From the IMG/VR virus record IMGVR_UViG_3300028569_002417, positions 161,528-225,527 of that record: a DNA stretch of 64,000 nt, one strand, 5' to 3'. The stretch's first letter is position 1; every line of letters begins with the position of its first letter. Below the pieces are notes generated by a model. The model was not told the origin of the DNA. It did no database searches and saw only the letters and a program-made list of their open reading frames with translations. Made by a program: the position numbers and the translations under genes. Below are positions 24,691 through 45,560 of this stretch, piece by piece.

Positions 24691-24734
24691 AAAAATAATT
24701 GACGGTAATGTTAAAGTTACCGTCAATTATTTTT
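24691..24734 (+). terminator. Intrinsic terminator after prkA
   Basis: aaaaataattgacggtaa / ttaccgtcaattattttt inverted repeat. Confidence 0.75.
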
Positions 24735-24815
24735 AGCTAGGTTTGCTTTATCGAAATCAATGGTTTATAATTTGATAAAGGCCAATCTTTGGCTTATCCG
24801 CTAAGAGGAATTATC

Positions 24816-25031
24816 ATGCAAAACCATTGGTTAGGTACTGCCCAAAGCAGGCAACTCATGAAAGAAATTGATGATGTTGCTTTGGATATTTGGGCTCAAG
24901 ATGGCACTCTTGGCGATCTTTTAGCAGCACTTACTGATGATCATACTGACCTTTTATTCGCAATGAAAATTAAAGATTTTACAAGTGATTCAAATAATGT
25001 TACTTGTGGAATCGAACTTATTTCTCCTTGA
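24816..25031 (+). CDS. Small hypothetical protein
   Basis: GAGGA RBS, ATG 24816. Confidence 0.55.
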   Translation: MQNHWLGTAQSRQLMKEIDDVALDIWAQDGTLGDLLAALTDDHTDLLFAMKIKDFTSDSNNVTCGIELISP

Positions 25032-25072
25032 ACATTAACAAGTACTGAGAGCTAAAAAAATAGAGGTGATTC

Positions 25073-26299
25073 ATGCCAAGAAGAATAGAGGAGGATTGGT
25101 CACATTTTCGTGATGTTGTTTCTGGACGAATCCGTAAGGCTCTCAAGAAATTTATAAAAAGTGGACAAATTGTAAAAAATCGTGGGAAAAATGGCAAAAT
25201 TTCCATCACAATCCCAAAGATTGATATCCCTCATATTGTCTACGGAAGCAACGGTGAAGGTGTTGGACGTGGACAAGGCAAAGAAGGCGATGTTATCGGT
25301 AAAGATCCAAAGAACGGAAAAGGAAAAGGAAATAGCGCAGGACAAGGTGAATCAGAAGGAATCACCATCAACCTCGATCTTGATGAAGTCCTAAAATTCA
25401 TGCAGTATGAGCTTCAACTTCCTAATCTGAAGAAGAAGCCTAATGAAATTTATGATGAAATAAAAATTAAATATAACAATATTTCTTTGATTGGTCCTGA
25501 GTCCCTCAGACACAATCGTCGTACTCTTATGCAAACACTTAAGCGTCAGGCTGCTGAAGGAACTCTTGATAAGATGAAGTATGTGGCAGGAGTCAAAGAT
25601 CCTGTTCGTGTTCTTCAGCCAATCAATGAAGATAAGCGTTACAGACAGTTCAACGAAATAAAGATTCCAAGCAGCAATGCACTTATTGTTTTCGCCCGTG
25701 ATGGATCTGGATCTATGGATCAAGCTAAATGTGAAATCGTAAGCGATATGGCTTGGTGGATTGATGTCTGGATTCGTCGATTCTATGACAGAGTTGATCG
25801 CCTCTACGTCTGGCATGACAGCGAAGCAATGGAAGTAGATGAGCAAAAGTTTTATAAGTATCGATTCGGAGGAGGAACAACTTGTTCTTCAGCATTAAAA
25901 TTTGTCACTAAACAATTTGAAAACAGATATCCTCCAAATAAATGGAACATTTATGTTTTCTATTTCACAGATGGCGAAAATTGGGGTGAAGATAATCAAA
26001 TATTCATCAATTCTTTAGCTGAAGATTTCAAACCTCATGTAGTTAATTTTACAGGAATCACTCAGATTCTTGCTTCAAGTTATAATGATTCAGTCAAATT
26101 TCATGTTGATGAAGCAATCAAATCAGGAAAATTAGATAAAGAATGCGTTCGCACAGTTGCAATTGGAGGAAGCCCCGATGGAAAATCGATGTGGTCTGCC
26201 CCAGCTTTGAGCGAAGAAAATAGAAACGAACAAGTAATTGAGGCTATTCAACAATTATTGGGCAATTCAAATAAAATAGTTCAGGATTACAAGGATTGA
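25073..26299 (+). CDS. yeaH: YeaH/YhbH (DUF444) vWA-domain protein
   Basis: G-rich linker, LQLPNL, RDGSGSM, GGGTTCSSAL, WNIYVFYFTDGENW; between prkA and spoVR. Confidence 0.92.
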   Translation: MPRRIEEDWSHFRDVVSGRIRKALKKFIKSGQIVKNRGKNGKISITIPKIDIPHIVYGSNGEGVGRGQGKEGDVIGKDPKNGKGKGNSAGQGESEGITINLDLDEVLKFMQYELQLPNLKKKPNEIYDEIKIKYNNISLIGPESLRHNRRTLMQTLKRQAAEGTLDKMKYVAGVKDPVRVLQPINEDKRYRQFNEIKIPSSNALIVFARDGSGSMDQAKCEIVSDMAWWIDVWIRRFYDRVDRLYVWHDSEAMEVDEQKFYKYRFGGGTTCSSALKFVTKQFENRYPPNKWNIYVFYFTDGENWGEDNQIFINSLAEDFKPHVVNFTGITQILASSYNDSVKFHVDEAIKSGKLDKECVRTVAIGGSPDGKSMWSAPALSEENRNEQVIEAIQQLLGNSNKIVQDYKD

Positions 26300-26308
26300 G
26301 GACTCATC

Positions 26309-30259: not shown

Positions 30260-30291
30260 AATGCCTAGAAATTATTTTCTAGGCATTTTTT
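30260..30291 (+). terminator. Intrinsic terminator upstream of cas12i
   Basis: aatgcctagaaa / tttctaggcatt plus T run. Confidence 0.75.
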
Positions 30292-30292
30292 C

Positions 30293-30321
30293 TTTACAAA
30301 AAAATAAAAGTGTTGTACACT
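30293..30321 (+). promoter_or_regulatory. Sigma70-like promoter of cas12i
   Basis: TTTACA (30293-30298), 17 nt, TACACT (30316-30321); same boxes at 52716-52744. Confidence 0.65.
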
Positions 30322-30362
30322 GCTCAGTAGAAATCCGCCACAAGGGCTACAGGAGCAGTGTC

Positions 30363-33300
30363 ATGGTCAGCGATAGCACTATTCGTCCTTATGCCAGCAA
30401 ATTGGCACCAAATGATCCTAAGCTGAAAATGCTTAACGATACATTCAATTGGCTAGACCATGCATACAAGGTATTCTTTGATGTATCAGTAGCACTTTTT
30501 GGTGCTATTGAACATGAAACTGCTCAAGAATTGATAGGTGAAAAAAGTAAATTCGACGCAGATCTAATCTGTGCTATCATGTGGTTTCGCCTAGAAGAAA
30601 AATCCGATAACCCCGGACCTCTCCAAACAGTAGAACAAAGAATGAGACTGTTCCAGAAATACTCTGGACACGAACCATCTTCTTTCACACAAGAATACAT
30701 CAAAGGAAACATAGATTCAGAAAAATATGAATGGGTAGATTGTCGTCTCAAATTTATAGACTTAGCTAGAAATATTAACACAACCCAAGAATCACTCAAA
30801 ATTGATGCATACACTCTTTTCATGAATAAATTAATTCCTGTAAGCAAAGATGATGAATTCAACGCTTATGGCTTGATTTCACAACTTTTTGGAACAGGAA
30901 AGAAAGAAGACAGATCAATCAAAGCAGCAATGCTTGAAGAAATCTCAAATATTCTCGCAGACAAAAAGCCAGATACTTGGGAAGAATATCATGATTTAAT
31001 TAAAAAAAATTTCAATGTTGATAATTACAAAGAACTTAAAGAAAAATTAAGCGCAGGAAGCAGTGGCCGTGATAGTTCTCTAGTAATTGACCTCAAAGAA
31101 GAAAAAACAGGACTACTTCAACCTAACTTTATCAAAAATCGTATTGTTAAATTCAGAGAAGATGCTGATAAAAAGAAAACTGTATTTTTATTGCCCAATA
31201 GAATGAAATTGAGAGAATTTATTGCTTCACAAATTGGACCATTTGAACAAAATAGCTGGTCAGCTGTTCTAAACAGGTCTATGGCTGCAATTCAATCTAA
31301 AAATAGCAGCAACATTCTATACACTAATGAAAAAGAAGAACGTAATAATGAAATTCAGGAATTGTTAAAAAAAGACATCTTGTCAGCAGCAAGTATATTA
31401 GGCGATTTTCGTCGTGGAGAATTTAACAGATCAGTGGTTTCAAAAAACCACTTGGGAGCAAGACTCAATGAGCTTTTTGAAATATGGCAAGACTTAACAA
31501 TGGATGATGGCATTAGAAAATATGTTGATCTTTGTAAAGATAAGTTTTCCAGAAGACCTGTAAAGGCATTGCTTCAATACATTTATCCATATTTCGATAA
31601 AATTACTGCAAAGCAATTCCTTGATGCAGCTAGTTACAACACACTTGTTGAAACCAATAATCGTAAGAAGATTCATCCAACTGTCACAGGACCAACAGTT
31701 TGTAATTGGGGGCCTAAGTCTACAATTAATGGATCAATAACACCACCAAATCAAATGGTCAAAGGAAGACCAGCAGGATCTCATGGAATGATCTGGGTCA
31801 CAATGACAGTCATAGATAATGGACGTTGGATCAAGCATCACCTTCCATTCTATAACTCACGCTATTATGAAGAACACTATTGCTACAGAGAAGGTCTGCC
31901 TACAAAAAATCAACCTCGTACTAAACAACTTGGAACTCAAGTAGGATCAACAATTTCTGCCACAAGTCTTGCTGCTCTTAAATCTCAAGAAGAGCAAGAC
32001 AGAAGGAATGATCGTAAAAATCGATTCAAAGCCCATAAATCTATCATCAGATCACAAGAGAACATTGAATATAATGTTGCTTTTGATAAGTCAACTAATT
32101 TTGATGTAACACGAAAAAATGGTGAGTTTTTCATCACTATCTCTTCTAGAGTTGCTACTCCAAAATATAGTTATAAATTAAATATTGGCGATATGATCAT
32201 GGGACTGGATAATAACCAAACAGCCCCATGCACATATTCAATTTGGCGTGTAGTGGAAAAAGATACAGAAGGTAGCTTCTTTCATAATAAAATTTGGCTT
32301 CAATTGGTAACTGACGGGAAAATAACAAGCATTGTTGACAATAACCGTCAAGTCGATCAGCTTTCTTATGCTGGCATCGAATACTCCAATTTTGCAGAAT
32401 GGAGAAAAGATCGTCGCCAATTCCTTCGATCAATTAACGAAGATTACGTTAAAAAATCAGATAATTGGCGTAATATGAATCTTTATCAATGGAATGCTGA
32501 ATATTCTCGTTTGCTTCTTGATGTCATGAAAGAAAATAAGGGCAAAAATATTCAAAATACATTCCGTGCAGAAATAGAAGAATTAATTTGTGGTAAGTTC
32601 GGTATAAGATTGGGAAGTCTTTTTCATCATTCACTCCAATTTCTTACTAATTGTAAGAGTCTTATATCATCTTACTTTATGCTTAACAATAAAAAAGAAG
32701 AGTATGATCAAGAGTTGTTTGACAGTGATTTCTTTAGGTTGATGAAAAGTATTGGGGACAAACGTGTTAGGAAACGCAAAGAGAAATCCTCAAGGATTTC
32801 ATCTACAGTATTGCAAATTGCAAGGGAAAATAATATCAAGTCTTTGTGTGTTGAAGGTGATTTACCTACAGCCACAAAGAAGACTAAGCCAAAACAAAAT
32901 CAAAAATCAATAGATTGGTGCGCCCGTGCTGTTGTCAAAAAATTGAATGATGGCTGTAAGGTATTGGGAATTAATTTACAGGCCATTGATCCAAGAGACA
33001 CAAGTCACTTAGATCCATTTGTTTATTATGGAAAGAAATCTACTAAAGTTGGAAAAGAAGCTCGATATACAATTGTTGAGCCATCCAATATAAAGGAATA
33101 CATGACAAATAGATTCGATGACTGGCATCGAGGGGTTACCAAAAAGTCAAAAAAGGGTGATGTTCAAACAAGCACTACTGTTCTTCTTTATCAAGAAGCT
33201 TTAAGGCAATTTGCTAGTCATTACGAACTTGATTTTGACTCTTTGCCAAAAATGAAATTCTATGATTTGGCTAAAAGATTGGGAGATCATGAAAAAGTGA

Positions 33301-33503
33301 TTATCCCTTGTCGTGGAGGAAGAGCTTATCTGTCTACTTATCCAGTGACAAAAGATTCCTCGAAAATAACTTTCAATGGTAGAGAAAGATGGTATAATGA
33401 ATCAGATGTGGTAGCTGCTGTTAACATCGTGCTGAGAGGCATAAGAGATGAAGACGAGCAGCCTGATGATGCCAAAAAACAGGCACTCGCTCGCACAAAG
33501 TAA
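30363..33503 (+). CDS. cas12i: Type V-I CRISPR effector Cas12i (1046 aa)
   Basis: AGGAG RBS then MVSDSTIRPY; LFQKYSGHEPS, FGTGKK, RuvC I IMGLDNN, RuvC II LCVEGDL, DWCARAV, TSHLDPFV, RGGRAYL, RuvC III SDVVAAVNI; adjacent array with AGAAATCCGTC..TTGACGG handle. Confidence 0.93.
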   Translation: MVSDSTIRPYASKLAPNDPKLKMLNDTFNWLDHAYKVFFDVSVALFGAIEHETAQELIGEKSKFDADLICAIMWFRLEEKSDNPGPLQTVEQRMRLFQKYSGHEPSSFTQEYIKGNIDSEKYEWVDCRLKFIDLARNINTTQESLKIDAYTLFMNKLIPVSKDDEFNAYGLISQLFGTGKKEDRSIKAAMLEEISNILADKKPDTWEEYHDLIKKNFNVDNYKELKEKLSAGSSGRDSSLVIDLKEEKTGLLQPNFIKNRIVKFREDADKKKTVFLLPNRMKLREFIASQIGPFEQNSWSAVLNRSMAAIQSKNSSNILYTNEKEERNNEIQELLKKDILSAASILGDFRRGEFNRSVVSKNHLGARLNELFEIWQDLTMDDGIRKYVDLCKDKFSRRPVKALLQYIYPYFDKITAKQFLDAASYNTLVETNNRKKIHPTVTGPTVCNWGPKSTINGSITPPNQMVKGRPAGSHGMIWVTMTVIDNGRWIKHHLPFYNSRYYEEHYCYREGLPTKNQPRTKQLGTQVGSTISATSLAALKSQEEQDRRNDRKNRFKAHKSIIRSQENIEYNVAFDKSTNFDVTRKNGEFFITISSRVATPKYSYKLNIGDMIMGLDNNQTAPCTYSIWRVVEKDTEGSFFHNKIWLQLVTDGKITSIVDNNRQVDQLSYAGIEYSNFAEWRKDRRQFLRSINEDYVKKSDNWRNMNLYQWNAEYSRLLLDVMKENKGKNIQNTFRAEIEELICGKFGIRLGSLFHHSLQFLTNCKSLISSYFMLNNKKEEYDQELFDSDFFRLMKSIGDKRVRKRKEKSSRISSTVLQIARENNIKSLCVEGDLPTATKKTKPKQNQKSIDWCARAVVKKLNDGCKVLGINLQAIDPRDTSHLDPFVYYGKKSTKVGKEARYTIVEPSNIKEYMTNRFDDWHRGVTKKSKKGDVQTSTTVLLYQEALRQFASHYELDFDSLPKMKFYDLAKRLGDHEKVIIPCRGGRAYLSTYPVTKDSSKITFNGRERWYNESDVVAAVNIVLRGIRDEDEQPDDAKKQALARTK

Positions 33504-33630
33504 GTCCTTGTCTTCAAAAGACTTACGAAATTTGCTCTTTGACAAGTAGGTTATTCTCATGTGGGTTAAGCATAACCTCTCGCTAATTGGATCGTAAGTC
33601 CTTACTCAGTATGGTATTGTGGGACAAGCC

Positions 33631-34554
33631 CCCACAATACCTGAGAAATCCGTCCTTCGTTGACGGTGCAATCCATCATGCATAATATAATTTTCATCGC
33701 TTCCCACAATACCTGAGAAATCCGTCCTTCGTTGACGGACCTATTGCTCGCCTGCCAGTGCCTTTCCCAGCGAGTTCCCACAATACCTGAGAAATCCGTC
33801 CTACGTTGACGGCGATGAAAATATACTATGTTATGCAGAAGATTTTATCCCACAATACCTGAGAAATCCGTCCTACGTTGACGGCTATGAGTAATTTTGA
33901 AGCTACAGATAGTTTTCCATACCCACCCACAATACCTGAGAAATCCGTCCTACGTTGACGGTCAAGTAATTCGATGCGTGTTTTATTTGTTTGAACCACC
34001 CACAATACCTGAGAAATCCGTCCTACGTTGACGGCTCCATCGAGACTTGTCGGCCCCACAATACCTGAGAAATCCGTCCTACGTTGACGGCTTGGGCAGT
34101 CCCGAAGGGTCTAACTGCAAAACGCTACCCACAATACCTAAGAAATCCGTCCTACGTTGACGGGGACTAGAGGCGCAGCAGGCTGAAGTTGAAGCTTATG
34201 CCCACAATACCTGAGAAATCCGTCCTCCGTTGACGGCCTGAGCCATGCCGCCAGTTGCTTGGCTTTAGAATTCCCACAATACCTGAGAAATCCGTCCTAC
34301 GTTGACGGGGTTGGAAGAAAAGAAGGGACGATCTTTTTGTTTTGTCCCACAATACCTGAGAAATCCGTCCTACGTTGACGGTGCGATTCAAAAGAGAATG
34401 TTGGGCTTGGCCAGTGGGCCCCACAATACCTGAGAAATCCGTCCTACGTTGATGGGCCGTGTTCTCGATGACGACCCACAATACCTGAGAAATCCGTCCT
34501 GCGTTGACGGAATGAGGTGACCTTCGTAAAGGTAGGCCCACAACACCCAAGAAA
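33631..34554 (+). CRISPR. CRISPR array: 13 full 36-nt repeats, 1 truncated terminal repeat, 13 spacers
   Basis: Consensus CCCACAATACCTGAGAAATCCGTCCTACGTTGACGG starting at 33631, 33703, 33777, 33849, 33926, 33999, 34055, 34128, 34201, 34273, 34346, 34420, 34475; degenerate at 34537. Spacer lengths 36,38,36,41,37,20,37,37,36,37,38,19,26. Confidence 0.98.
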
Positions 34555-35042: not shown

Positions 35043-36457
35043 GTGGAGATAGTCGGTTTTGAACATCTTCACTTGCACTAGTTTACTCCGATTTTTCTGT
35101 ATTAGATGGTTTTGGATCTGTAGAAGAGTATTGTGTTCGTGCTCCTCAGATCAATCAAAAGTTTTTAACAATTAGCGATCACGGTATGATGGGAGCAATT
35201 CCACGTCAGATTCGTGGATGTGAAAAAATTAATGACAAGTATGGCAAAGACACTCTTAGCCCCATATTTGCAGTCGAACTGTATATGAATCGTCTTCAGC
35301 CTGAGATGACAGAGCAGGACGAAGGAAAGAAAATATATTCAAGTCTGACAGAAGAAGAGCAAAGCGAATTTAAGTCTAGCAGTCATTTGCTCGCTATTGC
35401 CTACAGCAACGAAGGATATAAGAATCTTGTTCGTCTTTCTAGTTGGGGCTGGACAAAGGGATTTTATCGTCGCCCAAGAGTCAACTACGAACAATTACTG
35501 AAATATAAAGAAGGAATTATTTTCACAAGTTGTTGTTATGCCAGTGAGATTGGAAGAGCATTTGACAAAGGTGGAGAAGAAGCTGGATTCGCTATGGTCG
35601 AGCGTTATGTTGAAATGTTCGGCAAAGAACATTTCTATCTCGAAATAATGCTTTTGGATTTCAAAAAGCAAAAACCATATGATGAATTTATTGTAAAAGC
35701 AAAGGAAAAGTATGGTCTTAAAATCATACTCACAAATGATTGCCATTATTGCAACAAAGAAGATAGTCAATATCAGAGACTTATGTTGATGATGCAGACT
35801 AATCGTACTATTGCCGAAATTGAAAAGGCAATGAAGGAAGATTCAAATCAAGATTTCTTTGAGTTGCAGGATGCGAATCTTTGGATGAAGAGCGAAGAGG
35901 AATTGAATGATAAGTGGTTGAGTGATTATCAAGATTCAATTCCTTATGAGATTTTTTGCGAGGCCAAGAGGACAACTGTTGATATTTGCAAAAAGGCAAA
36001 GGGAGTTCAGCTTGATCGTAGTTTGAAATTACCATTTATTCCCGATGGTGATGAAAAATTGAGGGAAGAAATCATGATTGGTTTCCAAAAAAGGAAGCTC
36101 CCAAAGACAAGGGAATATCTTGATAGAATCAAGGAAGAATACAGTCTTATCATCAGGAAGGGATTTACGAGTTACTTTTTGATTCAAAAGATGATGACAG
36201 ATGAGGCTCGTAGAGTCTGTCGTGATTTGCTTGGATTTGGTGACGGCTCACAGGCTGTTGGTCCCGCTAGAGGCTCAGCAGCAGGTTCACTTATTTGCTA
36301 TTGTCTAGGCATCACTAGTGTCGATCCTGTGCGTGAAGGCTTACTCTTCAGTCGTTTCATGAGTGAAGCTCGTGGAGGAAGAAGCTTGCAGTTAGAATTC
36401 AAGAATATCGATCCTCTTCCACTAGAGGAGTTGGAATTGAGGCAGTCGGGGTTGTGA
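35043..36457 (+). CDS. dnaE: DNA polymerase III alpha, N-terminal PHP part; frame interrupted by 8 nt at 35079-35086
   Basis: AGGAGG + GTG gives MEIVGFEHLHLH, stop; second frame SDFSVLDG..ISDHG..HLLAIA..EGYKNL..TNDCHY..RGSAAGSLICYCLGIT..LLFSRF. Confidence 0.88.
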
Positions 36458-36462
36458 ATAAG

Positions 36463-37080
36463 TCAAGCATTGATTGCAGTGATGTCAGCTTCTTTTTCTG
36501 GTTCTGGAGAAACAGGTTCTTCTATGCAGCCCCTGTAACTTATTTGACCCTCTACTTCTCTTGTTTTATCTGTCATTTGTCTTGAATTTTCTCTTGCTAG
36601 ATCAGCTTGATATGTTGCTTCGTCATCGTTCGGAATTAGTATGCTGTGTGGAAGCCCAGACAACATTGTGTTAATGAGGTTTGAAACTTTTGTAAATAGT
36701 TCTTTTTCCATGAAAAGTTTTTGGCAAATTGTGATTTGTCTTCTTGTTGTTGCTTCACTTATTGAATCTCTTACTTCATCATAATTCATAAGACGATGTC
36801 TCATCATGTTGATGAAAACAGTTTTTGAGTTTGAAAAACCTCTTTCTCTGCCTCTCATTTCTGCTTCTAGTTCTTTTACATATTGTTCTTTGCTTTCTCT
36901 TTCAATGTTTTTTATAGAGAAAAATCGTTTATCTCTTTTACCACTTGATTTCATCGCACCTATGATGACCATTTCAAGCTTTGGAAAAGATACAACTTTT
37001 GTTCTTGTTGCTGCTTCAAAGAGAAACTGATTGCATTCAAGTATTTCTCTTTCAACAAGCCATTCAATGAATGAAAACAT
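36463..37080 (-). CDS. Hypothetical protein, capsid-targeting-like N-terminus
   Basis: MFSFIEWLVERE. Confidence 0.6.
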   Translation of the reverse strand: MFSFIEWLVEREILECNQFLFEAATRTKVVSFPKLEMVIIGAMKSSGKRDKRFFSIKNIERESKEQYVKELEAEMRGRERGFSNSKTVFINMMRHRLMNYDEVRDSISEATTRRQITICQKLFMEKELFTKVSNLINTMLSGLPHSILIPNDDEATYQADLARENSRQMTDKTREVEGQISYRGCIEEPVSPEPEKEADITAINA

Positions 37081-37105
37081 ATTTTACCTTTTTTAGAAAC
37101 TTTAA

Positions 37106-37912
37106 TTATTTATGCATGGTTGACAACAGTTTTTGAGGACAAACTTTATTATTTATTGTTATAATTTGATAATTATCTGGGTTGCAGCAAGGAATGGTAG
37201 ATGGTTCATAATCCATAATTTCAGGGACGTTAAATATAAATTTAACTATATCTTTCTGCCAACTTATTCTTTCACGAACTTTAGTTTCATCTGGATAAAG
37301 AAGAGTCATTCTTGGATGGTTAATAGAACCAGCATAATGGCTTGTTCCTGTATCGCATCCAACATAGTATTTTGATTTTTGAATATATTTGAATGTTGTG
37401 TGGATATCATCACTATAAACAACATTCTTGTCATTCAAAGGAAATAAATTTTTCTTTTCCGAATCGATCACACAGATTGTATCTTTGAATTTAGATTTAA
37501 GTGCGTAAAATAATTCTTGTGGGTTATTTATTGCTCTGGGAGTATTGTATTCAGGTGAAAGACAAGGTATGAAAACACAGTCATACTGAATTTCTGATTC
37601 ATTATATTTATATTGGCTTTCTGTGTAAAAGCCATTTTTCGACAGAAAAGGCGACCAAATCCATAAGTTTATGAAATTAACATTTGGATTTGAATTGATG
37701 TTATCAGGCAAGAAACGAACAAGATTGTCTGGAAACAATGATAATGCTGATATATGTGTGTTTGAATCTTTGTAGTCAATATTTATATTTTTTGATTTGA
37801 TGTATTTGTACAAAGCAGTACATTGAATTTCATCTCCAATCCTATTGGTGTAATTGGATTGGTAGATTGAATGACTGACAGAATCCCAGATTTCTTTGAA
37901 TTTATTAAACAT
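37106..37912 (-). CDS. GT9-like (heptosyltransferase-type) glycosyltransferase
   Basis: RIGDEI, YYVGCDTGTSHYAG. Confidence 0.65.
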   Translation of the reverse strand: MFNKFKEIWDSVSHSIYQSNYTNRIGDEIQCTALYKYIKSKNINIDYKDSNTHISALSLFPDNLVRFLPDNINSNPNVNFINLWIWSPFLSKNGFYTESQYKYNESEIQYDCVFIPCLSPEYNTPRAINNPQELFYALKSKFKDTICVIDSEKKNLFPLNDKNVVYSDDIHTTFKYIQKSKYYVGCDTGTSHYAGSINHPRMTLLYPDETKVRERISWQKDIVKFIFNVPEIMDYEPSTIPCCNPDNYQIITINNKVCPQKLLSTMHK

Positions 37913-37922
37913 ATAAAAAAAA

Positions 37923-37948
37923 TTAAGGGGAGAAAAATCTCCCCTTAA
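37923..37948. terminator. Hairpin, probable terminator on minus strand
   Basis: ttaaggggaga / tctccccttaa with A run on left. Confidence 0.6.
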
Positions 37949-37972
37949 CAATTGAGTTATGATTATTTATTT

Positions 37973-38893
37973 TCACTCATCTTCATCTTCATCTTCATCT
38001 TCATCTTCATCTTCATCTTCATCTTCATCTTCATCTTCATCTTCATCTTCATCTTCATCTTCATCTTCATCTTCATCTTCATCTTCGTCTTCTTCTTCAT
38101 CTTCGTCTTCGTCTTCATCTTCATCTTCATCTTCATCTTCATCTTCATCTTCATCTTCATCTTCATCTTCATCTTCATCTTCATCTTCATCTTCATCTTC
38201 GTCTTCATCTTCGTCTTCGTCTTCATCTTCATCTTCGTCTTCATTTGAAGCTATTTCAAAGATTGATTGGTTGAGTTTACGATTGAAGGATTCGTTGGTG
38301 GCAACTAGTGTTGCGATTGTTTCTATTGCTTCTGGCTGTTGTGACATGGTTAGCAAGAAAGCTTCAAAAAGACCTGTGCGCTTCATTTGGAGAACTGCGT
38401 CAAGGATATACTTTTCGTTTTCTTCGCAAACAGAGATTGCCTCTTTGATTGCTTCGTAGGCATGAGAAGGGTTGACGCTAAGACCAGCAAGTCTTTCGTT
38501 ACGAACCTTTTTTGTGAATTCGGCAAGGCTTAGTCTTTTGTTGCTATCAAGCCATTCTTGAGTCGTTTTGACATGAGGATAGCTACCTTTTTCTTTTGGT
38601 TCTTCGCCATGTGCTTTGGTTGGCATTTTTTCATAACCTTTGCCACCTTTATGACCAAGACCGTCAGAACCGAATCCTTTGTTGCGGTCAGCAGCATCTT
38701 TTCCGCCCTTGTAGGGAGAAACGCTACCGCTTTGGCTTTTGCCACCTGCATTTTTAGGGGTTTTGCCAAGACTTGGTGCTGTTGGTGTTGGGCCTTCATA
38801 ATCTGCTACGATATCGACTCTTGCTTTTTGTCCTTTGTCGTGAGCCTTTTTTCTCATTGACTCAACATAGGACTGAAAATTTTGGTTTACCAT
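37973..38893 (-). CDS. Protein with 89-residue Asp/Glu C-terminal tract
   Basis: GGAG RBS, MVNQNFQSYVES; (ED)n tail. Confidence 0.7.
   Translation of the reverse strand: MVNQNFQSYVESMRKKAHDKGQKARVDIVADYEGPTPTAPSLGKTPKNAGGKSQSGSVSPYKGGKDAADRNKGFGSDGLGHKGGKGYEKMPTKAHGEEPKEKGSYPHVKTTQEWLDSNKRLSLAEFTKKVRNERLAGLSVNPSHAYEAIKEAISVCEENEKYILDAVLQMKRTGLFEAFLLTMSQQPEAIETIATLVATNESFNRKLNQSIFEIASNEDEDEDEDEDEDEDEDEDEDEDEDEDEDEDEDEDEDEDEDEDEDEDEDEEEDEDEDEDEDEDEDEDEDEDEDEDEDEDEDEDEDEDEDE
37976..38242 (-). repeat. Hexanucleotide microsatellite (GAAGAT)n encoding (ED)n
   Basis: Directly visible; occasional GAC variants and one EEE. Confidence 0.97.
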
Positions 38894-38972
38894 TTTTTCT
38901 CCGTTTGCGTAAAACAACCTGTTAATCTATATAATCAATTAAAATTAAAAAAAACGTACTAAATAAAATTAC

Positions 38973-39324
38973 GGGGCCGTATTTAGAATTCGATTCGGAT
39001 GGACGGCTTGTGAGTGGCATGTAGAGGTTGGTCAGAAGGCCTCTTAAAAAATCTGACTAAAGCCTTAACTGGCGAAACTGTTTACGCTATGGCTGCATAA
39101 GTGCAACCACAGACTTAGGTAGCGATGCTAGTAGCGACCGAAAGTTTGATGTAAAATCTGGCTGGTCATATGCATTTCAATGGGCAAATGACGAGATAAA
39201 GTTGATAGTGCTGAAAAAGGTTTTATTTGTTGTACCTTTTCAGATGACATCAAGCAATAAAATAAACATGTAGAGGCTCACAGGTAGTTATGCGAAGACA
39301 GCGGGGCGGGTCCGCTCGGCTCCA
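38973..39324 (+). ncRNA. ssrA: tmRNA; tag peptide (A)GETVYAMAA
   Basis: 5' GGGGCCG pairs with 3' CGGCTCC-A including G3-U; ATTCGA motif; TAACT-GGC resume codon 39071, stop 39098-39100; 352 nt. Confidence 0.9.
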
Positions 39325-39370
39325 CTTGCCATGAAGACCTCTTGTTCATAAAATAGAACAAGGGGTCTTT

Positions 39371-40591
39371 ATGCTTATTTCTATTTTCACGCCAACTCAT
39401 AATACAAAATATCTTAATCGTTTATATCAAACCATAAAAAATCAAACTTACCAGCAATGGGAATGGATTATTTGTCCCAATAATGGTGCTGTTGTTGATA
39501 TTAAGGATGATCCTAGAGTTAAGGTTTTTCCAACAAACGGCTCTACCAATATTGGTTATTTGAAGAAATATGCTGCGAGTAAGTGTAAGGGCGAAGCAAT
39601 CATGGAAGTTGACCATGATGATGAGCTTTTTCCTAATGCTGTTGAGGAATGTGCAAAGGCATTTGAAGATTCGACTGTTGATTTTGCATATTCAAATTGC
39701 TGTGACGTGCAGGAAAATTATGAGCCAAGATTTTTTAATGAGAAATTTGGCTGGGTAAACAGACCATGTGTTTATGATGGTCGTAATCTTGTTGAGATGG
39801 TTGCATTTCCTCCTGATCCTGCGAGTATAAGCAAGATTTGGTATGCTCCCAACCATTTTAGATCTTGGCGCAAATCATTTTATGATCGTATTGGTGGTCA
39901 CGATGAGAGCATGGATGTTCTTGATGATCAAGATATAATGTGTAGAACTTATATTCATGGCAAGATGTTTCATATTGACAAGCCATTATATGTTTATCAT
40001 TTGCATCCAGAAAACACTTGTTATGGCGAAAAGAATGCTAAGATTCAGGAATTGTGCGTTGAATTGCATGACAAATACATTTACAAACTTGTTGAAAAGT
40101 GGTGTGATGTCAACAATTTGAGAAAAATTGATTTATGTGGTGGATTTAGCAGGCCAATTGGATATGAAAGTGTCGATCTTGAAGGTGCTGATATTACTGC
40201 TGATTTGAATGAGCGTTGGCCTTTTGAAGATGGAAGTGTTGGTGTTTTTAGGGCTCATGATGCTCTTGAACATTTGAAAAATCCTATTCACGCTATGAAA
40301 GAAGCATATCGTTGTCTTGCTCCTAATGGTTGGTTTTTAACATTAACTCCAAGTACTGATGGTCGTGGTGCTTTCCAAGATCCTACTCACATTTCTTTTT
40401 GGAACAGCAATAGTTTTTGGTATTATACAAAAGCAGAGCAGGCCAAATATATTGGCACTCCTGTTAAGTTTCAGTTGAATAGGATCAAGAATTTTTATCC
40501 AAGTGATTGGCATAAGTTTCATCAGATTTTGTATGTAAAAGCAGATTTGCTGAAATTTTCTGGTCGTGTTGCAGGTGGGGTTGAGATTTAA
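39371..40591 (+). CDS. GT2 glycosyltransferase fused to SAM-methyltransferase-like domain
   Basis: ISIFTPTHN, EVDHDD, IGGHDE; IDLCGG, ADLNERWPF, HDALEHL, AFQDPTH. Confidence 0.85.
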   Translation: MLISIFTPTHNTKYLNRLYQTIKNQTYQQWEWIICPNNGAVVDIKDDPRVKVFPTNGSTNIGYLKKYAASKCKGEAIMEVDHDDELFPNAVEECAKAFEDSTVDFAYSNCCDVQENYEPRFFNEKFGWVNRPCVYDGRNLVEMVAFPPDPASISKIWYAPNHFRSWRKSFYDRIGGHDESMDVLDDQDIMCRTYIHGKMFHIDKPLYVYHLHPENTCYGEKNAKIQELCVELHDKYIYKLVEKWCDVNNLRKIDLCGGFSRPIGYESVDLEGADITADLNERWPFEDGSVGVFRAHDALEHLKNPIHAMKEAYRCLAPNGWFLTLTPSTDGRGAFQDPTHISFWNSNSFWYYTKAEQAKYIGTPVKFQLNRIKNFYPSDWHKFHQILYVKADLLKFSGRVAGGVEI

Positions 40592-40670
40592 TGATGGATG
40601 TTGTTTTTTCACATGAATATGGCGGGGAAATAGTCTTGTTTTGAGGATTGTTTCTTTGTATTATCGGGTG

Positions 40671-41990
40671 ATGAGCAAGCAAAGATTCCTAGATGTTTGT
40701 GTCGCTTCTCTTCGTGCAAAGGGTTTGTACGAAGAGCAGCGTTATGCCAAAAGATTGAAGTGGGAAACAGAAGAGATCATTGCGAAGGAAAAGCACGAAT
40801 ATTTCCTTGATTTGTATGATAAGAAGGTGAAGTATCCTAAAAATCAAAACAATCTTTTGGTTTGTTGGCTTTTAGGTTTAGTTCCAGATCATGACATTGA
40901 GAAAGATCCTTCAAATGTATTCACGGGTGACTTGCCCGATGTAGACATTGATTATATTCCAATGGTTCGTGATTATTTGAAGAATGAATGGGCACCGAAA
41001 ACATTTGGCGAAGATTATGTTTGTAACATTGGTAACTATACGACATTTGGAATTAAATCGGCATTGATTGACATGGCTCGTGTTCATGGCGAAAGTCGTG
41101 AAGAGGTCATGGCAATCACTAAGAATCTTGATGCTAAGGATGATGAAGGCAAACCAATCACATGGGATGCAGCATTAAGGCTTGACCCTGAATTCAAAGC
41201 ATATACTGAGAAATATCCGTCAATTGCTCAAGCAACAAAAAAATTAATTAATCGCAATCGTGGCATGGGAGTACATGCTGGTGGATTGATTGTTTCGAGA
41301 ATTCCACTTCATGATCTTGTTCCTTTGGTTAAAAGGAAAGGTAATCCTCAAGCTAGTGCATGGGTAGAGGGACTACATGGGCAGGATTTGCAGCCTGTTG
41401 GCCTTGTTAAATTTGACTTACTTGTGATTAGTAATCTTTTGCAAATTGCTCGTTGTTGCGAGACTGTTAGAATCAATCATGGTGTTACTTCAATTTGTGC
41501 CAAGCCCGGAGAGCCAGATTGGTCTGATGTTGATTGTTGGAGGAATGATCCTGATTCAATTGCAATGGCTAATCGTGGTGATTTGAAATGTATATTTCAA
41601 TTTGATTCTGAGGGAATGAGGGCATTGGTTAGGGCTGGAGGAGTTGATCGATTTGAAGATTTAGTGGCATATTCCAGTTTATTCCGACCCGGCTGTATTA
41701 AATGTTTGCAAAAAGATTCTTTTGTTATGTTATACAATGGTCAAAAAGAAATAAAAAATTTGCAGCCGGGCCTTGATAATATAGCGTATCTAAATTCTCA
41801 AAGAAAAGTAAATTACACAAAAAGATATTTTGTCATAAATTCTGGTTATAAAAAAATATTGAGAATCACAACTAAAAGTGGCAAAGTCTTGCTTCTCTCG
41901 CCTGATCATCCAGTCTTGACTGATAAATTGAAATATATAAAGGCAGGAGTTCTTAAAATTGGAGATAAAGTTGGAGTAATTAAAAAATAA
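40671..41990 (+). CDS. dnaE: DnaE middle part (catalytic palm) ending in N-intein
   Basis: LPDVDIDY, GVHAGGL, GLVKFDLL, IFQFDSEG, LFRPG then intein block A. Confidence 0.92.
   Translation: MSKQRFLDVCVASLRAKGLYEEQRYAKRLKWETEEIIAKEKHEYFLDLYDKKVKYPKNQNNLLVCWLLGLVPDHDIEKDPSNVFTGDLPDVDIDYIPMVRDYLKNEWAPKTFGEDYVCNIGNYTTFGIKSALIDMARVHGESREEVMAITKNLDAKDDEGKPITWDAALRLDPEFKAYTEKYPSIAQATKKLINRNRGMGVHAGGLIVSRIPLHDLVPLVKRKGNPQASAWVEGLHGQDLQPVGLVKFDLLVISNLLQIARCCETVRINHGVTSICAKPGEPDWSDVDCWRNDPDSIAMANRGDLKCIFQFDSEGMRALVRAGGVDRFEDLVAYSSLFRPGCIKCLQKDSFVMLYNGQKEIKNLQPGLDNIAYLNSQRKVNYTKRYFVINSGYKKILRITTKSGKVLLLSPDHPVLTDKLKYIKAGVLKIGDKVGVIKK
41703..41987 (+). mobile_element. Split intein N-half (95 aa)
   Basis: CLQKDSFV (block A), GKVLLLSPDHPVLT (block B), LKIGDKV then stop. 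Confidence 0.88.
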
Positions 41991-42025
41991 TTCATATATA
42001 TCCTTGCACAGAGCGGGAGATATAT

Positions 42026-43039
42026 ATGATTTGTAAAATATGCAATAAAGAGGTATCAGAAAAATTTTATCGCCATCTAAATAGTAGTCATAAGATGAAA
42101 AAAGGAGATTATCTAAATTTGTTTCCAGAGCAAAAAGAGGAGTACAAAAGTCAAATTTCTGTTTTGTGGAACAAAGGAAAAACCAAGTGCGATGATGATC
42201 GCATCATGGCGATTGCCGATAAGATAAAAAAATTCACAGGACAGGAACACATACGAAAGCAAAGATCGGAAAACATGAAAAAAATGTATCAAAATGGTGA
42301 TATGTTGTCCCCTGAGATGAGAGCTTATGTGCAAAAAAAAGGCACAGATGGATGGGTCAAAAAGGTTAAGGAATCTTCTTTTGAAGAAAGAAAGATATTA
42401 TTAAAGAATTTTTCTGATGCTGGCAACAAAAAAATACAAGAAAATAAAATAAATCGCACGCCTGAAGATTATATGCGAATTTGCAAAAATGCCAAAGGAA
42501 AAGCTCAATATGGTAATTGTGCAGAATGCGGAAATCAAATTGTAATATGGGTTGGAGGCAAGCCACGACCTAAACAAAGATTTTGTAATCAATCATGTCA
42601 AAAAATATATCAAAAAAAACATCCTTTTTATACATTATCTCATGTTGGAAAGCATTATTTTTCAGAAAAAATGCAATGTGAATTTTATCTAAGATCAAAA
42701 TTAGAAATTTGGCTTGCAGAAATGTTAGATGTAAATGAAAAAGTGAATTCTTGGCATATTACACCATTCGCTGTAAGCTACGAGTTTCATGGAAAAAAAC
42801 GATTGTATTACCCAGATTTCATGATAAACTCAAAGTGGGTTGTTGAATTGAAATCTGGTTATATATTTGACATCGATGCCGACAAAAATAGAGCAAAGTT
42901 TATGGCTGCACAAGATTATTCAGAGGAGATAAATTGTGAGTTTTTTTATTGGCAATTTGATAATCACAATATGACAAAAAAGTTATTTGAAAAAGATCAA
43001 AGGGTGATTGATTTCTTTTCATTTTTACAGGAAGCATGA
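42026..43039 (+). CDS. Free-standing putative homing endonuclease (Zn fingers + TnsA-N-like PD-(D/E)XK)
   Basis: CKIC..HL..H, GKTK..D.RI, CAEC..FCNQSC, LRSKLE, YYPDF, VELKS; lies between split-intein halves. Confidence 0.8.
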   Translation: MICKICNKEVSEKFYRHLNSSHKMKKGDYLNLFPEQKEEYKSQISVLWNKGKTKCDDDRIMAIADKIKKFTGQEHIRKQRSENMKKMYQNGDMLSPEMRAYVQKKGTDGWVKKVKESSFEERKILLKNFSDAGNKKIQENKINRTPEDYMRICKNAKGKAQYGNCAECGNQIVIWVGGKPRPKQRFCNQSCQKIYQKKHPFYTLSHVGKHYFSEKMQCEFYLRSKLEIWLAEMLDVNEKVNSWHITPFAVSYEFHGKKRLYYPDFMINSKWVVELKSGYIFDIDADKNRAKFMAAQDYSEEINCEFFYWQFDNHNMTKKLFEKDQRVIDFFSFLQEA

Positions 43040-43040
43040 A

Positions 43041-43172
43041 ATGCTTGATTTTGAAGAAATAGTTCAGATTGAAGAGGTTGGTGAAGATGATTGTTATGAT
43101 ATTATGTTGTTAGAAAAAGACTTGTATTTGGACGAGCCAAATTTTATAGCTAACGATATTGTTGTTCACAAT
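43041..43172 (+). mobile_element. Split intein C-half (44 aa)
   Basis: EIVQIEEVGEDDCYDI...NFIANDIVVHN followed by Cys+1. Confidence 0.9.
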
Positions 43173-45560
43173 TGTGGCATGGACAAGCGTTATGTTGAGC
43201 GTAAGAAGGGTCATGAAAAATATGAAATTCATCATTTAATCAAGCCTATTCTTGAAAAAACATATGGAGTTATGATTTATCAAGAGCAAATCATGCAGAT
43301 ATTGAATGTTGTTGGTGAAATTCCTTTGAAGGATTGTGAAGCTGTAAGAAAAGCTATATCAAAGAAGAAAATAGAATCTATTGAAAAATATAAAGATATG
43401 TTTATTAAGAATGGGCAGAAAAATTTAAGTTTTACAAAAGAACAAATGGAAGAGTTTTTTAATCAAATATTGTCTTGGAGTGAATATGGCTTTAATAAAA
43501 CTTTGACCGAAGACACAATTATAAATTGTGTTGATGGCGCAAAGCAAATAAAAGACATTTGTGCCGGAGACATAGTTTATTCTATAAATGAAAAGGGAGA
43601 ACAGGTACAAACTGAAGTTGCGGCAGTTCATGATCATGGCGTGGTCAATGTTGTGGAGGCGACATTTGATGACGGCTATGTTGTGAGGTGTACTTATGAT
43701 CACAAATTTTTGACTGAAGAAGGACAAGTTCCTCTTTGGTTAATTGTTAAAGACAACATGGTTGTGCTGAGTTCTCCGTTGGGAGAACATGCAGGGGAAG
43801 AAAAAGAATGGTCATCTGGCAAGGTGTGGACAAATAATAAAAACTCTGGAAAAGATGAAAGAGCATCGAGAGAATTGCAAGGAGTGCAACTATCTGAAGT
43901 GGAGGCTGGAGGGAAAGAAATACATTTCCAGATGCGGAGTGGAATTTCTGCGTTCACCTCAACTGGTCCAAAATCATCAGAAAACTGGAGAAATGAATTC
44001 GGAGTGGTTCACTTCACTCCAGAGTATGCTTCTATCACCAATACCCGGAATTTGGTGTCTAGGAGAATATTACGAGTTGTGACCGTGGGTAAAAGACAAT
44101 GTTACGATCTTGAAGTCGCCATCTCAACTCACAACTTTATTCTTCCGAATGGAATAATCACATCGAACTCACATGCTGTGGCTTATACTTACATCAGCAT
44201 GTATCTTTTGTATTTGAAGGTTCATTACCCTCATGAATTTTATGCTAGCATGTTATCATGTGAGACTTTGGCTGAGAAGATAAAAGACATTAAGATGGAG
44301 GCTAAGATACATGGTGTTGAGATGCATCGTCTTGACATTAACAAATCTGGCATTAATTTTGAGCTTAAGGATAATTTAATTTATTTTGGTTTTAGTAATG
44401 TGAAGGGTATAGGAGAGGGTCCTGCTCAAAAGATAGTGGCTGGTCAGCCGTATCGTAGTTTTGAGGATTTCCTTTATCGATGTGGAACAGATGCTTCGAT
44501 GTTGAAGCCGATACTTGGTTTAAGATGTTTTAGGGATCGTGATCCAATTACTTTGTGGAAATTTGCAGAGCATTTCAAAGAATGTTTTAAGAAAAACGAA
44601 GAGAAGCGCAAGCGTTTTGGTACTTCTTTGGAGAGGTACGAAGACGAGTTAAGGGAGCTTATTCCTGAAGTTGAATTCAAATTATCTGATTTGAGTGGTG
44701 ATTCACCATTTGATAACATTGAGTATCAGCAAAAATATGATAAGGAAGAGGAGATTACTGTTCTCAAGGAGTATGAGTGTAAGGAAGGGGATGGTGTTGG
44801 AAGGATTGAGATGGTATATGTTCCTGTTGATGGGACTGATGTTGTGATTGAGCGTGAGGTGATGAGATATTACAAGAAGATTGCTACTAAGAGGCCTTGG
44901 AACAGGTGGAAGGATCTTAAGAATCTTTGGAATAAAAGAAAGAGAACTATAGCGAGATTTTCTGATGCTGATTTCAAGACATTGCCAAGATTGATTGATT
45001 TCGATCCAGACCAATATGATATACCTAAGGATTTGGCTAAGGAGTTTAAGAATCCGGTTGTTTCAGAAGAAAAGTTTTATGGATTTGCTTGGATTCATGA
45101 GCTTGAGAGAAGTCCTGATTATAGAGGGAATTTGACATTTGATTCTTTGAGAAGTGACATTGACAGTTCTTCTGGTCCTGTTGAGTTGAGGGTTAAGAAA
45201 GTAATTCAGATGACTAGTAAAAAGGGTTCTACTTATTCTCAGGTATTGGCGGAAGATGTTACTGGTCAAGAGAATAAGATTAATGTTTGGTCTGATGACT
45301 GGGATCGTTGGCATAAAGAATTAAGTGAAGGTAACTTAATTAGGATAAGATTGCAACCTCCTTCTGGTGGTTTCAATACATTCTTGTTGGAATCAAATCA
45401 GAATGGCAAGTATAGAGGTCAGAAGAGATATCGAGACAAGGATGATGATCCTCGTGTTATTGTCATGAGAGTTGGCTTAAAAGAAGAAGAGAAATTCATG
45501 ACAGATGAAGAGGTTTTGGAACTTTTTAATAATTTAGGTATGGAAAATAAAAATGACTGA
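43041..45560 (+). CDS. dnaE: DnaE C-terminal part, starting with C-intein and containing a cis intein
   Basis: ILEKTYGVMIYQEQIMQ, YGFNK..SHAVAY, YLKVHYP, DINKS, VKGIG, OB-fold end. Confidence 0.92.
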   Translation: MLDFEEIVQIEEVGEDDCYDIMLLEKDLYLDEPNFIANDIVVHNCGMDKRYVERKKGHEKYEIHHLIKPILEKTYGVMIYQEQIMQILNVVGEIPLKDCEAVRKAISKKKIESIEKYKDMFIKNGQKNLSFTKEQMEEFFNQILSWSEYGFNKTLTEDTIINCVDGAKQIKDICAGDIVYSINEKGEQVQTEVAAVHDHGVVNVVEATFDDGYVVRCTYDHKFLTEEGQVPLWLIVKDNMVVLSSPLGEHAGEEKEWSSGKVWTNNKNSGKDERASRELQGVQLSEVEAGGKEIHFQMRSGISAFTSTGPKSSENWRNEFGVVHFTPEYASITNTRNLVSRRILRVVTVGKRQCYDLEVAISTHNFILPNGIITSNSHAVAYTYISMYLLYLKVHYPHEFYASMLSCETLAEKIKDIKMEAKIHGVEMHRLDINKSGINFELKDNLIYFGFSNVKGIGEGPAQKIVAGQPYRSFEDFLYRCGTDASMLKPILGLRCFRDRDPITLWKFAEHFKECFKKNEEKRKRFGTSLERYEDELRELIPEVEFKLSDLSGDSPFDNIEYQQKYDKEEEITVLKEYECKEGDGVGRIEMVYVPVDGTDVVIEREVMRYYKKIATKRPWNRWKDLKNLWNKRKRTIARFSDADFKTLPRLIDFDPDQYDIPKDLAKEFKNPVVSEEKFYGFAWIHELERSPDYRGNLTFDSLRSDIDSSSGPVELRVKKVIQMTSKKGSTYSQVLAEDVTGQENKINVWSDDWDRWHKELSEGNLIRIRLQPPSGGFNTFLLESNQNGKYRGQKRYRDKDDDPRVIVMRVGLKEEEKFMTDEEVLELFNNLGMENKND
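43500..44168 (+). mobile_element. Cis intein (223 aa) at YGFNK|SH, begins with Thr
   Basis: TLTEDT, CTYDHKFLT, CYDLEV..HNFILPNGIITSN|S. Confidence 0.88.
43789..44082 (+). CDS. Overprinted alternative-frame ORF inside the intein (Cys/His-rich)
   Basis: GGGAG RBS + ATG; spans the intein linker and ends just inside the C-terminal splicing region. Confidence 0.45.
   Translation: MQGKKKNGHLARCGQIIKTLEKMKEHRENCKECNYLKWRLEGKKYISRCGVEFLRSPQLVQNHQKTGEMNSEWFTSLQSMLLSPIPGIWCLGEYYEL

Follow-up and report, generated by a model that had tools for sequence, protein, structure and literature searches.

Can the catalytic core of a replicative DNA polymerase be divided between two separately encoded polypeptides when no intein marks the point of division? 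This question is raised by a dnaE locus in a stretch of 64,000 nucleotides (nt), hereafter the window, which covers positions 161,528 to 225,527 of IMG/VR virus record IMGVR_UViG_3300028569_002417 and forms the last 64 kb of a 225.5-kb viral contig with a CheckV completeness of 52%. The window carries long open reading frames (ORFs) throughout under the standard genetic code. Three of its genes, designated here P1, P2 and P3, carry the parts of the C-family polymerase DnaE, and a preliminary description of this DNA had read them as a DnaE built from three genes with a duplicated junction region. Our analysis suggests that the locus probably encodes one replicative C-family DnaE of two non-covalently associated polypeptides, P1 and a spliced P2-P3 product. 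Two further readings are linked to it, namely that the active site is built in trans by strand exchange between the subunits, and that an insert hotspot in the PHP gene P1 is read by ribosomal hopping; taken jointly, they are put forward tentatively and have somewhat less than an even chance of both being right. The features of the locus are the following.

35043-36457, + strand: P1 as a whole, PHP domain and nucleoside triphosphate (NTP)-binding half of the palm.
35043-35078, + strand: P1 segment a, 12 codons from the GTG start to the PHP HxH motif (..EHLHLH).
35079-35086, + strand: 8-nt non-coding insert TAGTTTAC, delimited by comparison with relative P0122 and independent assemblies.
35087-36457, + strand: P1 segment b, rest of PHP, glycine-serine (GS) loop half of the palm and tail ..RGGRSLQLEF.. 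(Pfam, family alignment).
40671-41990, + strand: P2 as a whole, ATG start as in homologues.
40671-40934, + strand: P2 N-terminal extension of 88 amino acids (aa), a diverged copy of the palm N-half (hhalign, alignments).
40935-41702, + strand: P2 extein, catalytic palm half, thumb and start of the fingers, ending ..RPGCIK (Pfam).
41703-41987, through the stop at 41990, + strand: N-half of a split intein, 95 aa, CLQKDSF start, block B SPDH (extein colinearity).
41987-42034, + strand: RNA hairpin over the endonuclease start codon (-20.5 kcal/mol, z -5.9, 0 of 200 shuffles as good).
42026-43039, + strand: free-standing endonuclease-like gene, 337 aa (Pfam, PHROG).
43041-45560, + strand: P3 as a whole.
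43041-43172, + strand: C-half of the split intein, 44 aa, ending ..VVHN, +1 Cys.
43173-43499, + strand: P3 extein 1, rest of the fingers to ..YGFNK (Pfam DNA_pol3_finger).
43500-44168, + strand: contiguous 223-aa intein, TLTEDT.. to ..TSN, +1 Ser (Pfam Intein_splicing, 42.6 bits).
44169-45560, + strand: P3 extein 2, SHAVAY.., helix-hairpin-helix (HhH) domain, C-terminal region and stop (Pfam HHH_6, PF14579).

The break between P1 and P2 falls inside the palm. As the preliminary description had stated, P1 ends (...LLFSRFMSEARGG..., then the stop at 36455-36457) just before the expected PDxDxD and no intein motif is found in P1 of the window; the Pfam DNA_pol3_alpha profile is split at 98/100, with positions 2-98 matched in P1 and 100-259 in P2. 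The PHP domain of P1 is recognized by Pfam (E 2e-21), and the family alignment has a mean column identity of 72%, with R395, G396 and S397 of the GS loop invariant. Likewise invariant are the PHP positions DH, E, H, C and D.H, which by motif reading we take to be metal ligands, and residues R429, G430, G431 and F438 of a tail such as canonical DnaE does not have. The downstream P1 frame shows no further stop over 456 codons, and the length of P1 by coordinates, 12 + 456 codons (~468 aa), is close to the 471-484 aa of uninterrupted ORFs in relatives. To judge from these alignments, P1 is under strong purifying selection. P2, which starts 4.2 kb downstream, holds PDVDID and a third Asp in ..KFDLL.., and these three catalytic Asp (D90, D92, D249) are invariant in the P2 alignment; the Pfam finger domain PF17657 spans P2 and P3. 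The features of the DnaE class (PHP, GS loop, three Asp, fingers, HhH) are present on two polypeptides, and what is absent is the single polypeptide from PHP to the C-terminus. P3 extein 2 is colinear with the DnaE of LR756511, a 595-kb uncultured huge phage and the nearest deposited phage record to the window; an oligonucleotide-binding (OB) domain was not reported by the Pfam scan.

The extension with which P2 opens repeats, in diverged form, the region with which P1 closes, as had been proposed from the motif strings RYAKRLKWE..EYFL..LLVCWLLGL and EYLDRIKEE..SYFL..LICYCLGI, both of which are present. Alignment by hhalign of 103 P2 N-termini to 107 P1 C-termini was colinear over P2 residues 1-88 (E 2.9e-7 local and 9.5e-8 global, probability 92-93%). 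When the two junction copies were compared pairwise by BLASTP, the matches were colinear with E values of 0.04 and 0.09, and Pfam found no match in the 86-96-residue extension alone, so that profile-profile comparison was needed for junction homology. By tblastn, P2 from residue 5-25 onward matches, in one segment, intact DnaE genes of unrelated phages (of Rhodococcus, Gordonia and Escherichia), and the matches of P1 and P2 on LR756511 overlap by 258 nt. On the evidence of these comparisons the extension is homologous to the P1 C-terminus and to the DnaE palm. It has no GS loop, about 20 residues around the GPxRGS loop being missing relative to P1; its residues R28, N58 and N61 (NxNN) are invariant, it occurs in >100 homologues down to 40% identity, and by this conservation it is not decaying. 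A profile search of 1.84 billion representatives matched 256 cluster representatives; in the best 150 of the 256 the extension stood at the N-terminus of proteins of ~820-1340 aa, and no independent canonical DnaE match was among these 150.

The division is a stable property of a group of phages. Two IMG/VR scans yielded 92 related loci. Both genes were seen in 56 locus pairs from ~45 distinct contigs, and in all 56 P2 follows downstream of P1 on the same strand at a distance of 1.0-9.4 kb; the identity of P1 to its counterpart in the window correlates with that of P2 (r 0.945). A separate P1 with its own stop is present in ~45 distinct related contigs; the only unsplit relative is LR756511, with one 1183-codon frame, without inteins and without the extension. 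In the window's contig and in five related contigs of 245-381 kb the two halves are the only dnaE genes found, leaving no different dnaE with which P1 might pair. A scan for DNA polymerase families in the window's contig and four relatives, all incomplete, found no PolB, and the only other DNA polymerase homologue, seen in the window's contig and three relatives, was a PolA-like ORF of ~446 aa (family A polymerase-like, G000:C1:149792-150601, outside the window).

P1 and P2 are also predicted to bind. The complex model of P1 with P2(1-360) reached an interface score ipSAE of 0.82 (0.75, 0.82 and 0.82 in three runs) against 0.10 for the best of 3 controls. Among complexes of solved structure 58 of 80 attained this mark, against 2 of 110 mismatched pairs. 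The runs shared at least 84% of contacts, with a partner model confidence (pLDDT) of at least 84. P1 had been described as a separate PHP subunit, and the separate gene stands; it also holds the NTP-binding half of the palm, modelled against the catalytic strand of P2, and in the light of the model it looks like an obligatory part of the polymerase core, more than a PHP subunit.

Production of such a subunit depends on a peculiarity that the preliminary description had overlooked: a frame break of 8 nt at 35079, for which non-standard decoding would be needed. Segment a, preceded by AAGGAGG ~9 nt upstream of the GTG at 35043, encodes (M)EIVGFEHLHLH with CAC as the last His codon, placing the PHP HxH motif upstream of the gap. 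A TAG at 35079 directly follows this CAC, and segment b (..SDFSVLDG.. to the stop) is read in the -1 frame relative to segment a. The 97%-identical P0122 reads ..HLHLHSDFSVLDG.. and lacks the 8 bases, TAGTTTAC, that stand between CAC and TCC in the window; the last three of these (TAC) equal CAC at positions 2 and 3. The 8-nt insert is real DNA: it is present in the independent assemblies L004, L006, L036 and L037 and in a contig of the independent DNA run X3, which has no indel at 35079-35086.

Two ordinary solutions were considered and rejected. An internal start for segment b fails since the downstream frame has no ATG, GTG or TTG before 35186. Recoding of the TAG fails since the next TAG follows within 9 codons and the conserved sequence would not be produced, and also because the 5-, 7- and 8-nt inserts of the family are out of frame and some relatives have TAA or TGA.

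Sorting of 81 related loci into 51 distinct P1 sequences showed how the site varies: 22 have no insert, 21 have one of 5-8 nt (e.g., L017, L014, L054, L071, L074, L068, L072, L078), six have one of 40-47 nt (L008, L020, L032, L039, L077, L095) and two have a group I intron. The 40-47-nt inserts form 11-18-bp stems (-23 to -39 kcal/mol). About half of the relatives carry a short or a hairpin insert, and these inserts fall at three neighboring sites within the first 20 codons of the PHP gene. In 19/19 distinct short inserts a stop codon directly follows the take-off codon, and in 18/19 the last triplet equals the take-off codon at two or more of three positions (NAY after His CAY; CTT or CTA after Leu CTY). 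Three short variants have the form CTY TAA CTN with matched Leu codons; an exact landing match is found only in the Leu cases, and the ORF call for P0124 implies CAC to CAC. Inserts of 5, 6, 7 and 8 nt all restore one downstream frame, and the uninterrupted alleles show no length variation at the site. The 11 codons upstream of the insert change mostly synonymously among 13 distinct interrupted alleles, and interrupted alleles of 58-100% identity keep coding on both flanks. On the P1 tree, a quick IQ-TREE search, insert states are scattered and switch between close relatives, the well-supported branches forcing at least 8-10 changes. The group I introns (L079:9767-9992 and L088:9769-9996; Rfam RF00028, 91 and 102 bits) interrupt the same few PHP N-terminal codons, after ..HTDFSL, which marks the site as a homing hotspot.

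For full-length P1, the ribosome, or less likely a step at the RNA level, would have to skip the insert. In the proposed course of events, peptidyl-tRNA-His would make a short hop from CAC over UAG to UAC, skipping 8 nt. A short hop explains all of the pattern, i.e., the stop in first place, the matched landing and the common frame of 5-8-nt inserts, whereas a fixed frameshift, recoding or an internal start does not. The insert of the window, the short inserts of relatives, the hairpins and the introns at one site form a pattern that points to a programmed hop. Short hops over stop codons of the CUU UAG CUA type were reportedly observed in E. coli by Weiss and colleagues in 1987. The putative hop of P1 shares with those and with T4 gene 60 a stop directly after the take-off, a similar landing codon and one colinear protein as the product. 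It differs from T4 gene 60, a 50-nt bypass with a take-off stem-loop, in the length of the gap (8 nt in the window, 5-8 in the family), in the lack of a detected stem-loop, in a nascent chain of 12 residues and in a landing match at 2/3 positions.

Several observations speak against the hop. The nominal binomial P of 2e-10 for the landing match ignores shared ancestry; the window shows no stem-loop at the site (local fold z 0.7 to 1.4); RNA contigs from three runs cover only 36397-36658 and 36959-37125 and not 35079; and unprogrammed hops over stop codons are inefficient, of the order of 1% in E. coli. Taking both sides together, we give a programmed hop at the P1 insert roughly an even chance. 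Its chief rival is that the break is not hopped and is dealt with by a +1 or -1/+2 frameshift adding 1-3 residues, by removal of RNA, or by use of a P1 without the HxH strand. The group I introns of L079 and L088 show that RNA-level solutions exist at this site, the 40-47-nt hairpins could be processing signals, and no hop signal is detectable in the window. One fixed frameshift, however, cannot serve inserts of 5, 6, 7 and 8 nt, the stop with which every short insert begins matters to the ribosome and not to splicing, and neither the resemblance of landing triplets to the take-off codon nor the constant length of uninterrupted alleles is in its favor; we regard it as possible, if on balance unlikely. 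Should the short and hairpin inserts be read by programmed hopping, they would form a large natural bypass family beyond T4 gene 60. The inserts are perhaps kept for destroying the target of a homing endonuclease.

How would two such subunits form one active site? The GS loop of enzymes with the Pol-beta fold binds the incoming triphosphate. This role is stated for Pol III by Iyer 2021 (PMC7824862). Subunit 1 would be P1, with an intact-looking PHP, the GS-loop half of the Pol-beta-like palm and the clade-specific tail. Subunit 2 (~916 aa) would arise by split-intein ligation of P2 to P3 and self-removal of the contiguous intein, and would comprise the degenerate palm N-half with NxNN instead of GS, the catalytic Asp triad, thumb, fingers, HhH and C-terminus. 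In the complex model, P1 V391 in the strand before the GS loop contacts P2 Y95, just after DxDxD, P1 helices 353-378 lie against P2 helix 97-112, and Q435 of the P1 tail contacts P2 residues 60, 81 and 82. When P1 is folded alone, the GS loop (392-397) and the tail (423-439) have pLDDT <50. The active site may thereby be completed in trans, the P1 strand before the GS loop pairing with the P2 strand that carries DxD, and a second contact, dead in catalysis, may form where the P1 tail docks on the degenerate copy in P2 (NxNN loop). In this picture the duplicated junction would serve the subunits as a mutual handshake, in which the dead remnant of the DxD strand in P1 pairs with the dead GS-less copy in P2.

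The arrangement is open to a different interpretation, in which P1 is an autonomous PHP 3'-5' exonuclease or phosphoesterase with its palm serving as a docking handle, and P2-P3 is self-sufficient, its own copy replacing the palm N-half. The single-chain model of P2 (mean pLDDT 86) gives some substance to this idea, the N-terminal helical module being complete, with a pLDDT of 95-98, and colinear with DnaE 287-390; the invariance of the aligned PHP ligand positions in P1 also fits. It is contradicted by the lack of the triphosphate-binding GS loop in the P2 copy, by the invariance of this loop in P1 despite the absence of any catalytic Asp there, and by the complex model, which sets the P1 loop and strand beside the DxD strand of P2. 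We consider an autonomous P1 improbable and retain the two-polypeptide DnaE as the likely reading.

Certain points nevertheless count against a two-subunit enzyme with exchanged strands. Binding is predicted by a model, just as the hop is read from sequence alone. The complex score may reflect the model's memory of intact DnaE structures, which would make it a measure of likeness and not of binding, and the picture of a strand swap is drawn from contact lists. Taken by itself, the homology between the P1 tail and the DxD strand does not reach significance. Residues 83-341 of the P2 model match the palm and thumb of DnaE (Z 13.1 to 4iqj, root-mean-square deviation (rmsd) 6.3 A over 230 residues; Z 11.9 to 5lew), but the extension in the single-chain model overlays E. 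coli 287-390 only loosely (rmsd ~11 A).

The origin of the break can be approached through the DNA that separates P1 and P2, which contains the following.

36463-37951, - strand: two ORFs of 205 and 281 aa, variable filler found in only 5 and 12 related loci.
37973-38917, - strand: revDE, a gene of Asp/Glu-rich repeats (tblastn, 48 loci).
38973-39327, + strand: transfer-messenger RNA (tmRNA) gene (Rfam RF00023, 100 bits).
39330-39373: terminator-like hairpin after the tmRNA (terminator scan).
39371-40591, + strand: fusion gene of glycosyltransferase-2 and methyltransferase (Pfam; 18 related loci).

Across the clade revDE is conserved between P1 and P2, and in LR756511 it lies upstream of the intact dnaE (L001 10712-11647). 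The tmRNA gene has the same position in L008, L020, L079 and L088 and is upstream of dnaE in L001; ARAGORN did not call the tmRNA of the window and called that of LR756511, with the tag ANPEFAMAA. The order in LR756511 is revDE(-), tmRNA(+), AAA ATPase, small ORF, dnaE. Since revDE and tmRNA are constant contents of the gap, the gap is not a mobile insert, and since the same block precedes dnaE in LR756511, the block is ancestral and P1 lies beyond it. Within revDE, a long trinucleotide repeat (window 37977-38300) codes for a run of Asp and Glu in this gene and, read on the opposite strand, for poly-Ser.

As far as the comparison of sequences goes, the break between P1 and P2 is an old one. 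The data fit, as we infer, an event in which the 5' part of dnaE was partially duplicated or transposed, and the preliminary description had reached the same notion of duplication with reciprocal loss: the P2 copy kept DxD and lost the GS loop, P1 kept an invariant GS loop and has no DxD, and the gene order of LR756511 agrees. The break would have arisen once, probably by partial duplication of the dnaE 5' part across the revDE-tmRNA block, after which the downstream copy would have lost PHP and the GS loop and the upstream copy everything past the junction. The split would then have become fixed in a large clade of huge freshwater phages, with the inteins and the endonuclease gene as later selfish additions.

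The break might also have been made by a mobile homing-endonuclease cassette, the extensions being assembly tails derived from the element and not from a duplication of dnaE. T4 gp39/gp60 (MobA) and Aeh1 NrdA (MobE) likewise show an intein-free split of an essential enzyme with reassembly via new C- and N-terminal extensions, the T4 split topoisomerase even has a translational bypass in the same gene, as proposed for P1, and the present locus is full of selfish elements. In T4 and Aeh1, however, the extensions come with the cassette, whereas the P2 extension is a paralogous copy of the protein's own domain, homologous to the DnaE palm itself. Moreover, unlike in those splits, neither Pfam nor PHROGs detected an endonuclease gene in the P1-P2 gap of the window, and the conserved revDE and tmRNA represent ancestral synteny. 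Such a cassette is accordingly a quite improbable source of the break.

That P1 is a decaying pseudogene, with frame break and truncation as damage, is very improbable: the in-frame TAG after 12 codons and the lack of a downstream-frame start before 35186 would agree with decay, but not the absence of other stops in 456 codons, the 72% column identity with catalytic-type residues invariant, the presence of P1 in every relative in co-divergence with P2, or the coding kept on both flanks of interrupted alleles of 58-100% identity. An assembly or sequencing artefact (chimeric contig or indel error) can practically be dismissed, for while the sequence comes from a metagenome-assembled contig, the same architecture is found in dozens of independent IMG/VR contigs, most of the stretch is held by 17 lake or freshwater metagenome runs from at least 12 studies, and the independent DNA contig is without an indel at 35079-35086.

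We found no description of this intein-free P1|P2 split in the collection of papers searched. The closest case is the minimal Pol III alpha of group 2.2 jumbo phages, split into two separate genes that are predicted to reconstitute one enzyme (PMC7824862). There, too, an intein-free break separates the NTP-binding from the Mg- and template-binding subdomains. That version is minimal, without PHP or other DnaE domains, has PolB alongside and distant genes, and a duplicated junction was not reported for it; the enzyme described here is a full PHP-bearing DnaE with no PolB in the contigs examined, with genes 1-9 kb apart in fixed order and a duplicated junction.

The second division, between P2 and P3, is of a different kind. 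Joining of P2 and P3 by trans-splicing, as the preliminary description had proposed, is supported by the intein motifs, by the endonuclease gene between the halves and by extein colinearity. The N-intein starts at 41703 (CLQKDSF) and not directly after RPG. Pfam support for the N-half alone was below the cut-off (E 0.005). Predicted splicing of the exteins gives RPGCIK+CGMDKRY, equal in length to intein-free relatives, and P2-P3 spliced by coordinates would have 344 + 109 + 463 = 916 residues, within the 907-950 aa of the fused ORFs of relatives. Short gaps at the RPG intein site had been suspected in six relatives and were rejected as mere ends of BLAST segments. The contiguous intein starts with Thr1 (ACT) and has Ser in place of His before the final Asn; inteins at this site in relatives have Ser1 (L011, L015) or Cys1 (P0022), and Thr1 is, to our knowledge, very rare among inteins.

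The endonuclease-like ORF begins 35 nt after the P2 stop and ends 1 nt before the P3 start. Its product has N-terminal Cys motifs and a C-terminal PD-(D/E)xK/TnsA-N-like domain, with a match to DUF7487 at 29.1 bits (cut-off 27) and to TnsA-like_N below the cut-off (E 8e-5); it matches a PHROG endonuclease family, NCBIfam gave sub-threshold TnsA-like matches only, and phmmer found no sequence match in the Protein Data Bank. No Vsr match was obtained by sequence, the matches being to restriction-endonuclease-fold families only (TnsA-N-like, DUF7487). The unit of P2, endonuclease and P3, including the hairpin over the endonuclease start, fits the fractured-gene arrangement, in which split intein halves flank a free-standing homing endonuclease gene, three DnaE loci among them, and in which a hairpin over the endonuclease start codon has been described (PMC2677866). 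The window shares with fractured genes the gene order, the tight spacing, the hairpin, a further intein in the host gene and a ~330-aa protein whose C-terminal third holds an endonuclease domain of type-II-restriction-like character; the endonucleases of fractured genes are of a Vsr-like family, and that of the window has DUF7487 and TnsA-N-like matches only. An intein-free P1|P2 break is not described by Dassa et al. 2009 (PMC2677866).

The cyanobacterial split DnaE (Ssp/Npu) is also encoded by two genes and restored by protein trans-splicing, but the genes for its two halves stand apart in the genome and have no endonuclease gene with them, and a non-covalent split is absent. Its site is presumably near ..EY|CFNKSH.., close to the contiguous intein of the window and not to RPGCIK|C.

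P2 and P3 are fused in most relatives, which makes the inteins recent and sporadic additions. In other relatives RPG..|C, GFNK|S or both sites are occupied by a split or contiguous intein, even at 96% identity; P0002, which is 96% identical, is intein-free. Judged by these gene structures, what the clade conserves is a pair of genes, one for P1 and one for a fused P2-P3 of 907-950 aa, so that a DnaE from three genes holds for the window itself but is a recent overlay. Among the homologues of P1, P0126, P0132, P0154-P0166, P0230, P0236 and P0238 include proteins of 596-811 aa with inteins inside the PHP/palm piece, in which Intein_splicing, Hint or LAGLIDADG domains are recognized. All three DnaE pieces are thus intein targets in this clade.

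Other parts of the window were noted in passing. A type V-I CRISPR (clustered regularly interspaced short palindromic repeats) locus at 30261-34520 has a 1080-aa ORF for Cas12i (phmmer versus 6ltp, Cas12i2, E 1e-101), and its array at 33630-34520, with 13 repeats of ~36 nt at a spacing of 72-74 nt, ends ~500 nt before P1. At 22596-29107 there is a trio of genes for a phage PrkA kinase, DUF444 (YeaH-like) and a SpoVR-like protein; the SpoVR homologue (26309-29107) carries a LAGLIDADG-containing intein.

Among relatives of the window the dnaE locus has accumulated a split intein with an endonuclease, a contiguous intein with Thr, Ser or Cys, group I introns and gaps that begin with a stop. To judge by the ORF calls for P0123, P0124 and P0127, wrong calls of P1 by annotation pipelines are to be expected throughout this clade, and the split intein and the Thr1 intein are candidate tools for protein ligation. 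If the gaps are hopped, natural bypass sites would rise from essentially one family to dozens of variants of differing lengths. A gene that is first duplicated in part, its copies then degenerating reciprocally, passes through no dead intermediate, and this would be a route of gene fission unlike splitting by inteins or by endonuclease cassettes. If the proposed exchange between subunits is true, this DnaE shows how partial duplication makes an intein-free gene split viable, and it would provide a natural test case of which parts of a C-family active site can be supplied in trans and of the communication between PHP and palm.

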